Below are positions 34,633 through 35,205 of a DNA stretch of 64,000 bases, in pieces (the first letter of the stretch is position 1; each line of letters opens with the position of its first letter). A program made the translations under genes and the position numbers. Under the pieces are notes generated by a model that saw only the letters and a program-made list of their open reading frames with translations, made no database searches and was not told the origin of the DNA. The stretch is from positions 186,001 to 250,000 of the forward strand of contig NW_026933462.1 in assembly GCF_032062105.1 (NCBI RefSeq), in the 5' to 3' direction. Source of the stretch: Saccostrea cucullata. Taxonomy: Eukaryota.

Positions 34633-35205
34633 CTGTGAACACATCATCAAACAGTGAACACTTTGCGGCAACACAAAAGGGAGCCAGCAACAATGTTGCT
34701 TTATTAGGGCATCCCAACAAAGACAGTGTCACATCATCAATCAGTGAACACCAAACCACGACTTTAGAAATGGGAGCCAAAAAATCTCCCCAAAACAAAA
34801 ATTTGTGTCACATCATCAATCAGTGAACACAAACATACAAATTGCAAATGGGAGCCAAACATACTCCCCAAAACAAAAATTTGCGTCACATCATTAATCA
34901 GTGAACACAACATACAAACTGCAAATGGGAGCCAAACATACTCCCCAAAACAAACATTTGCATCACATCATCAATCAGTGAATGCCAAAACACAAATTGA
35001 AAAATGGGAGCTAATCAATCTCCCCAAAGAAAATTTGTCACGTCATCAATCAGTGAACACAATCACACAGAATGCAACTGGGGACTAGCAATTCTCCCCA
35101 AAATAAAATCGTGTCACAACATCGATCAGTGAACACCAAACGCAAATGAAAACCCGCAACAATTTTACTTAAAAACTGGCATCAAACAGACAAAGTGTCA
35201 CATTA
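34633..35205 (-). repeat. ~78-nt tandem hairpin array in the Ngaro 3' non-coding region (left copy); candidate structured RNA
   Basis: 7 cores GTCACATCATCAATCAGTGAACAC plus a partial eighth; spacers contain GGGAG..CTCCC. Confidence 0.85.

Follow-up and report, generated by a model that had tools for sequence, protein, structure and literature searches.

What could be the role of a short RNA hairpin that is repeated seven times in the 3' non-coding region of an Ngaro retrotransposon? The locus that raises this question lies in the genome of the oyster Saccostrea cucullata, at 34630-35205 of a 64,000-nucleotide stretch of contig NW_026933462.1 (assembly GCF_032062105.1; positions 186,001 to 250,000 of the forward strand), hereafter the window, to which all positions given without a contig name refer. 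The array reads on the minus strand, which is the sense strand of the element; unit positions are given on the plus-strand ruler. The stem of the repeated hairpin, termed hp1, is a real base-paired helix, and the array as a whole is likely a selected array of sense-strand RNA hairpins. The reading that we favor, at a probability of about one half, is that the array acts in cis within the genomic (sense) RNA of the Ngaro element, where it is read as a lineage-specific tag.

The hp1 array and its stem

Tandem Repeats Finder (TRF) detected a 78-nt period with 5.5 copies at 34726-35147, and a Hamming scan located seven minus-strand cores within 34630-35205, separated by gaps of 76, 75, 77, 78, 79, and 90 nt, in agreement with the initial annotation, which had described seven cores about 78 nt apart on this strand. 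In the consensus hairpin, represented by U5 (34805-34830), a 5' arm of 8 nt with one bulged U and a 3' arm of 7 nt enclose an 11-nt loop composed of U, G, and A only; UUUG/CAAA flanks lengthen the stem to ~11 bp, and RNAfold predicted exactly this hairpin. The first unit, U1 (35111-35136), is degenerate in that A13 is changed to U, so that it lacks A2b; this change is fixed in all genomic copies and recurs in the first unit of L033, a family introduced below. U2 (35035-35060), U3 (34960-34985), U4 (34883-34908), and U6 (34726-34751) complete the series together with the last unit, U7 (34635-34661), whose 3' arm GUGUUCAC gives two U.U mismatches and thereby a 2x2 U.U internal loop. An orphan 3' arm is present at the 5' edge of the array (~35187-35197). 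A second, near-identical array lies on the minus strand at 41885-42460, in a duplicated copy of the element, and retains CUGA in U7 and ..ACGC in U2. Counting the loop word (up to one mismatch) revealed 14 occurrences in the window, compared to 3.1 ± 1.7 in shuffles; 12 of the 14 fall inside the two arrays, every one of them on the minus strand. The family is present at about 20 loci in the 1.17-Gb genome, with a number of units that differs among the copies. When searched against the whole genome, the hairpin model returned only these same ~20 loci, and a second hp1-bearing family was not found in the assembly. No partner sequence complementary to the loop was found on the sense strand of the element.

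A covariance model (Infernal) built from 15 units matched a total of 89 units (70 distinct ones), which lie in the genomic copies of the family and on related contigs. Across these units, 88% of the paired-column cells form a standard pair. Cells that were changed on both sides numbered 16, against 6.1 ± 2.1 in shuffles (0/500 reached 16), and the covariation score was above that of all 500 shuffles; as the shuffles ignore relatedness, we regard this result as supportive rather than decisive. Quantification of the wobbles revealed G.U or U.G in 44 cells of the sense strand and A.C or C.A, which would be the wobble on the other strand, in only 6. When counted as distinct derived states, the asymmetry is 13 vs. 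5, which is suggestive and points to the sense strand. Individual units illustrate both effects. U3, for which two compensatory pairs had been reported (as unit 5 of the initial annotation), reads GCAUU../..AUGC as claimed, and this double compensation is fixed in all seven long genomic copies. U4 carries the U.G wobble (..ACGC) that had been described for it, and the copies of U4 form a graded series: GUGU/ACAC, ACGC, GUGU/AUGC (two wobbles), GUAU/AUGC, and GCAU/AUGC. The earlier claims that the stem covaries and that its wobbles work on the minus strand are thus both upheld.

A snoRNA-like arrangement (after small nucleolar RNAs), in which the 3' arm of one unit would pair with the 5' arm of the next, is rejected because U3 covaries within the unit. 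The proposal that the first and last arms close the entire ~550-nt region fared less well. The orphan arm is indeed complementary to the 5' arm of U7, but the closure is unsupported: an uncompensated C is found in the copies L003 and L004, and the pairing is absent from the minimum free energy structure of the whole array. It is one among the many arm-to-arm pairings that a repeat allows.

Conservation across Ngaro lineages and the el2 module

The hairpin recurs in other Ngaro lineages. In the contig L032, obtained from other samples, the recombinase is 66% identical to that of the window element and a 100-nt array is present; L158 and L200-L203 were grouped with this family by their common hairpin stems. 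The hairpins of the L032 family share the 17-nt loop and top stem of the window array but have a different lower stem. A third lineage, L033, with a recombinase that is 64% identical, has the same core on yet another stem that is devoid of the bulge. When single units from each lineage were aligned, only two pyrimidine positions of the core varied, while the linker and the lower stem differed; the lower stems differ among the three families yet still pair. Likewise, the hp1 core, the 3' strand of a second module (el2, see below), and their order are retained across lineages, and the linkers diverge. Neutral DNA should be unalignable at 64-66% recombinase identity. The cross-lineage sequence constraint on the loop and top stem is strong and provides our strongest line of evidence.

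The stems are not a by-product of the word itself. A metagenome scan for the 17-mer yielded at least 120 single matches, apparently due to chance; there were no arrays and no matching el2 arrangement among the matches listed, and since only 6 of the 120 listed extend by three or more pairs, the word alone does not account for the hp1 stems. The hairpin was not found in Pecten maximus or in the more distant families L159, L025, and L030. Counted as close relatives that lack hp1 are L031, whose array consists solely of el2, and the array-less L025 and L030.

The initial annotation had also noticed a GGGAG/CUCCC hairpin in the spacers, which RNAfold predicted as well. The spacers of U1-U5 bear these GGGAG-N9-CUCCC hairpins, each of which is a shortened version of el2. 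A full-length el2 is located in the U6 spacer (34679-34715, minus strand) and combines an inner hairpin with an outer stem, GGGA(U)GCC/GGCUCCC, that carries a bulged U. The module is conserved in five Ngaro families, at differing places in the 3' region (L025 4758-4797; L030 4716-4755; L031 2950-3230; L032 1990-2240; L033 2458-2494). It is present in two array-less families (L025 and L030), in one family with a 58-nt array of el2 alone (L031 and L154-L157), and in the family of the window and the other hp1-bearing lineages. The stems of el2 are near-invariant, and covariation says little about them. Because el2 is conserved also in families without hp1, the sequence comparison indicates that hp1 is a lineage-restricted addition to an older conserved el2 module.

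Two further observations concern the module and the linkers. At 34679-34686 and in every el2 copy, the invariant 3' strand of the module, which reads UGGCUCCC (but UGGCUCCCC in L032), shows complementarity to the final 8-9 nt of the oyster tRNA-Asp(GUC) (L198 1451-1522) including the added CCA. A primer-binding site would normally be longer, and the match may be due to chance (~4% by our estimate). Many units also have a run of AUUUUUG or AUUUUUUG between hp1 and el2 (linkers after U3-U5, e.g., 34790-34800; L032 2085-2100; L033 2545-2555). This resembles an Sm-site-like heptad placed between two hairpins; the strand is U-rich, and the run may mean nothing.

The host element and its surroundings

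The host element is a true Ngaro-type element with reverse transcriptase (RT)/RNase H, tyrosine recombinase, and SGNH hydrolase coding regions and split direct repeats, the features by which Ngaro elements are defined (PMC7192593). Its coding domains and repeats bear out the original placement of the array in the 3' non-coding region, on the sense strand. The gene order on the minus strand is ORF1 (where ORF denotes open reading frame), RT/RNase H, tyrosine recombinase, and SGNH/GDSL hydrolase. The Gag-like ORF1 (40270-41150) is split into two ORFs and truncated ahead of its zinc fingers. The RT/RNase H ORF (37030-38442) matches RVT_1 (3e-13) and, weakly, RNase H; the tyrosine recombinase ORF (36164-37135) gives phage-integrase SAM-like matches, and among its 463 homologues those that are named are from bivalves. 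ORF3 (35490-35945) encodes an SGNH/GDSL-type hydrolase, for which the Lipase_GDSL_2 match is weak here and reaches 3e-7 in intact relatives; such an ORF is an optional feature that occurs in some Ngaro elements (PMC7192593). From the stop of ORF3 to the start of the array there are 285 nt.

Downstream, the split direct repeats follow the layout A1 - body - B1 A2 B2. Between the downstream end of the array and the start of B1 (31903-32180, minus strand), ~160 nt belong to the element; A2 (31708-31873, minus strand) matches the 5' end of the element (A1, ~48499-48664); and B2 (31262-31540, minus strand), the 3' end of the element, is 98.6% identical to B1 and separated from A2 by a 167-nt spacer. 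The array is now apart from B1 because an unrelated 2.3-kb mobile insertion (32306-34600), which is not part of the feature, sits between them and splits the 3' untranslated region (UTR) ~30 nt downstream of U7. The whole element is tandemly duplicated, as 34599-41421 and 41854-48664 match at 98.9% (a 7.26-kb duplication), and this accounts for the presence of the second array. A further insertion that resembles a miniature inverted-repeat transposable element, with 71-nt terminal inverted repeats that are 93% complementary, is common to both tandem copies (38720-40150 and 45980-47400), and the duplication is therefore later than this insertion. There are no N stretches in the window.

The 2.3-kb insertion next to the array is covered 50-200x in poly(A) RNA-seq, in both read orientations. 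Reads connect the end of the insertion with its start (34598/34600 to 32306), some reads inside it skip ~1.16-1.19 kb, and hundreds of loose ends at both of its borders continue into other flanks. The insertion contains ~150-bp internal repeats that are rich in CACGTG-like words. Elsewhere in the window, several blocks of a ~150-bp satellite (80-91% identical) occur in both orientations (6790-7700, 25460-26370, 28640-29190, 52810-53650, and 55460-56700). A conserved long structure overlaps the 5' part of B1 (32150-32230; also at 41700-41780) and is composed, in order, of CUACUGGUGGCGCAGAC, a perfect hairpin (32181-32205), and ACCAGUAG; a conserved GCAGCCGUGGCC...CGCCAAUAAA block comes after it. 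This structure is common to all Ngaro families examined (L025 4575-4650; L030 4530-4600; L031 3360-3440; L032 2494-2570).

How the array may be read

In the reading that we favor, the signal would consist of two conserved stem-loop modules in tandem, namely hp1, with its bulged stem of up to ~11 bp and its 11-nt U/G/A loop, and el2. The repeated loops may form a multivalent binding platform for a protein, and the bound protein would label the full-length RNA of the element itself, either for packaging or so that its reverse transcriptase is recruited; in such a complex, the hp1 loop might or might not adopt a kink-loop (K-loop) fold. The likeliest partner would be the Gag-like ORF1 protein of the element itself. 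In intact relatives (L028 493-1578; L154 2-1072), ORF1, for which no Pfam match was obtained, ends with a CCCH finger (C-X8-C-X4-C-X3-H) followed by a CCHC-like finger (C-X2-C-X3-H-X4-C), so that the element has a candidate RNA-binding protein of its own; ORF1 in the window stops just within the first finger. Since hp1 is absent from close relatives, a lineage-specific tag fits better than an essential site for a host factor. An RNA tag of this kind that is read by an element protein is the mechanism that we prefer, with moderate confidence.

Several observations weigh against this reading. ORF1 as the partner is something that we purely infer. The units include 25 uncompensated mismatch states, as is expected of dead copies, and recombination between units within the shared loop can make chimeric stems that resemble wobble intermediates. 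Only weak folding z-scores (-0.5 to -2.2) were obtained for the sense strand, a measure that is not informative on a strand this rich in U and G, and the within-family diversity of stem plus loop is not significantly lower than that of the spacers. In three oligo-dT RNA-seq runs of the species, which are unstranded, the element is covered at a depth of only 0-5x; in one metatranscriptome, contigs of low depth match 35037-35256 as well as the ORFs. Finally, the genome contains other arrays, which would speak for the tag if they belonged to Ngaro elements. They are large, with a period of 55-67 nt, and in them hairpins with a UAUGGUCC loop stand on varying stems, e.g., CUAAACACG/CGUGUUUAG or GUGCA/UGCAC (C1850 33276-35825, C354 52212-54416, C7584 25801-26138, and others), but no Ngaro coding or non-coding motifs were found near them in two 10-kb pieces.

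A number of these points would be equally at home if the array had no function at all, i.e., if a palindrome had been amplified by slippage or unequal crossing-over and its symmetry had been kept by DNA template switching and gene conversion. Arrays evolve in concert, chimeric stems could arise by recombination in the shared loop, copies differ in their number of units, dead copies show near-uniform diversity, and hardly any expression of the element was seen in the RNA-seq runs described above. We nevertheless consider this explanation improbable, since neutral sequence should be scrambled at 64-66% recombinase identity, yet both the hp1 core and the el2 3' strand persist in the same order, and the lower stems that differ among the three families still pair. 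The latter observation also bears on the idea that the motif acts as double-stranded DNA, either as a set of transcription-factor sites or as sites for the tyrosine recombinase, in which a central spacer would separate inverted arms. The arms are quasi-palindromic and a 19-bp core is strongly conserved; the loop contains TGATTGATGA, which resembles a PBX-HOX composite site, whose consensus the variants TGATTAAT and TGATTTAC would presumably still suit; and non-coding tandem repeats of retroelements are often enhancers. However, the compensatory changes in U3 and the differences in the arms between families restore pairing rather than a protein half-site, the wobbles are strand-asymmetric (44 vs. 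6), and L033 and u5 of L032 are fixed for TGACTGAT, a variant that ruins the TGAT half-site. As for a recombinase, the 11-bp spacer is long for a core site, and seven tandem sites would be expected to delete each other. Taken as DNA, the motif is thus a very improbable explanation of the locus.

A narrower question is whether each hp1 is a true K-loop, as the initial annotation had proposed. In that case, the pairs C-G, U.U (or U.C), G.A, and A.G would cap the stem beneath a 5-nt loop, and a host protein of the L7Ae family, be it Snu13/15.5K (to which Nop56/58 and fibrillarin might be added) or a different member, would turn the 3' UTR into a multivalent ribonucleoprotein (RNP). The sequence fits exactly, with D' CUGA, a 3-nt spacer, C' AUGAUG, and a regular helix on the stem II side; laid out on the CAC/GUG helix it reads C-UGA-UUGAU-GAU-G, with 5 nt between A1n and G1b, and the general loop pattern that is fitted is CUGA-N3-RUGAUG. 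Among the 70 distinct units, G5, A6, and G12 are retained in 67-68 and A13 in 64. Variation is concentrated at L1 (G9), at position 7, and above all at 3b (U14: 40 U, 28 C), which is also a CpG site, so that positions L1, L3, and 3b are variable and the four GA positions mostly constant; variation at L1, position 7, and 3b is what a kink-turn (k-turn) tolerates under the k-turn rules (PMC5061560). The pattern holds across the three families, and within the family the GA positions show about half the diversity of the spacers (0.058 vs. 0.113), although this effect is only a trend (p = 0.066-0.074), in the direction of better-conserved GA dinucleotides but short of significance.

Other features of the loops fit less well. 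U8 and A10 are equally invariant for no reason that a K-loop would provide, and the core is broken in fixed units: A13 is changed to U in U1 and in the first unit of L033, G5 to U in two units of one subfamily (L009 and L010), and the closing C to A in u1 of the L032 family in every sample, with G5 additionally changed to U in L200-L202. At the level of the sequence pattern, the loop is consistent with the geometry claimed for it, but a critical A or G is missing from some fixed units. Moreover, the loop amounts to three UGA triplets and fits other short motifs too; the close relative L031 has no hp1; and no Rfam snoRNA or other match was obtained. With regard to the reader, isolated eukaryotic Snu13 is reported to bind K-loops poorly or not at all, in a study that also describes binding of Snu13 to a canonical K-loop in the presence of Nop5-fibrillarin and to the human U24 K-loop (PMC8413462). 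A 2026 preprint further describes thousands of 15.5K-bound RNAs with a C/D motif that lacks a C-stem (10.64898/2026.08.03.742641). On balance, we hold it possible but rather doubtful that the individual hairpins are K-loops bound by a host protein. We are similarly tentative about a K-loop array that would load host Snu13, perhaps with the box C/D core proteins, onto the genomic RNA and would thereby hijack the assembly of snoRNPs or small nuclear RNPs, or else traffic through the nucleolus, so that this RNA is stabilized, exported, or packaged.

Two known RNA classes were considered for the units and rejected. An Rfam scan of 33500-36500 (E ≤ 10) returned three chance matches only and no snoRNA, hammerhead, or other family. 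A box C/D snoRNA is disfavored by the lack of such a match and by covariation that lies within units and not between them, and a hammerhead ribozyme (CUGANGA...GAAA) by the lack of a match and of any GAAA-helix III arrangement in the units.

Comparison with described systems places hp1 closest to the archaeal box C'/D' K-loop (L7Ae, C/D small RNAs) and the eukaryotic U24 C'/D' K-loop, with which it has in common the D' CUGA, a short spacer, and the C' RUGAUG, as well as potential tandem sheared G.A/A.G and U.U pairs, a helix on one side, and a terminal loop that replaces the C stem. Unlike these, hp1 is located in a retrotransposon 3' UTR, is repeated seven times, lacks guide sequences as well as a terminal C/D pair, and is missing a core purine in some fixed units. 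The 15.5K-bound klRNAs of mammalian introns likewise have a C/D motif pair without a C stem and a proposed eukaryotic L7Ae-family reader (preprint 10.64898/2026.08.03.742641); there, however, the 5' end of a small processed RNA bears the C box and its 3' end the D box, whereas in hp1 D' precedes C' in one loop of a long transcript. If hp1 did form K-loops, this would be the first mobile element to use L7Ae/k-turn recognition in multivalent form, and it would bear on whether eukaryotic Snu13 reads K-loops in vivo.

The array also resembles the RNA signals of retroviruses and retrotransposons (packaging signals, constitutive transport elements, and the 3' UTR stem-loops of long interspersed nuclear elements), which are conserved, untranslated stem-loops, often repeated, with loops that a protein reads in order to select or move the full-length RNA. 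In the literature searched, no such cis-acting stem-loop element has been described for Ngaro or DIRS elements. To our knowledge, almost nothing is known about how these elements select their RNA or initiate reverse transcription. For DIRS-1, the primer is still unknown (PMC7192593). A short, repeated hairpin with a defined loop that is conserved across lineages would provide a concrete handle on RNA selection in Ngaro and DIRS elements.
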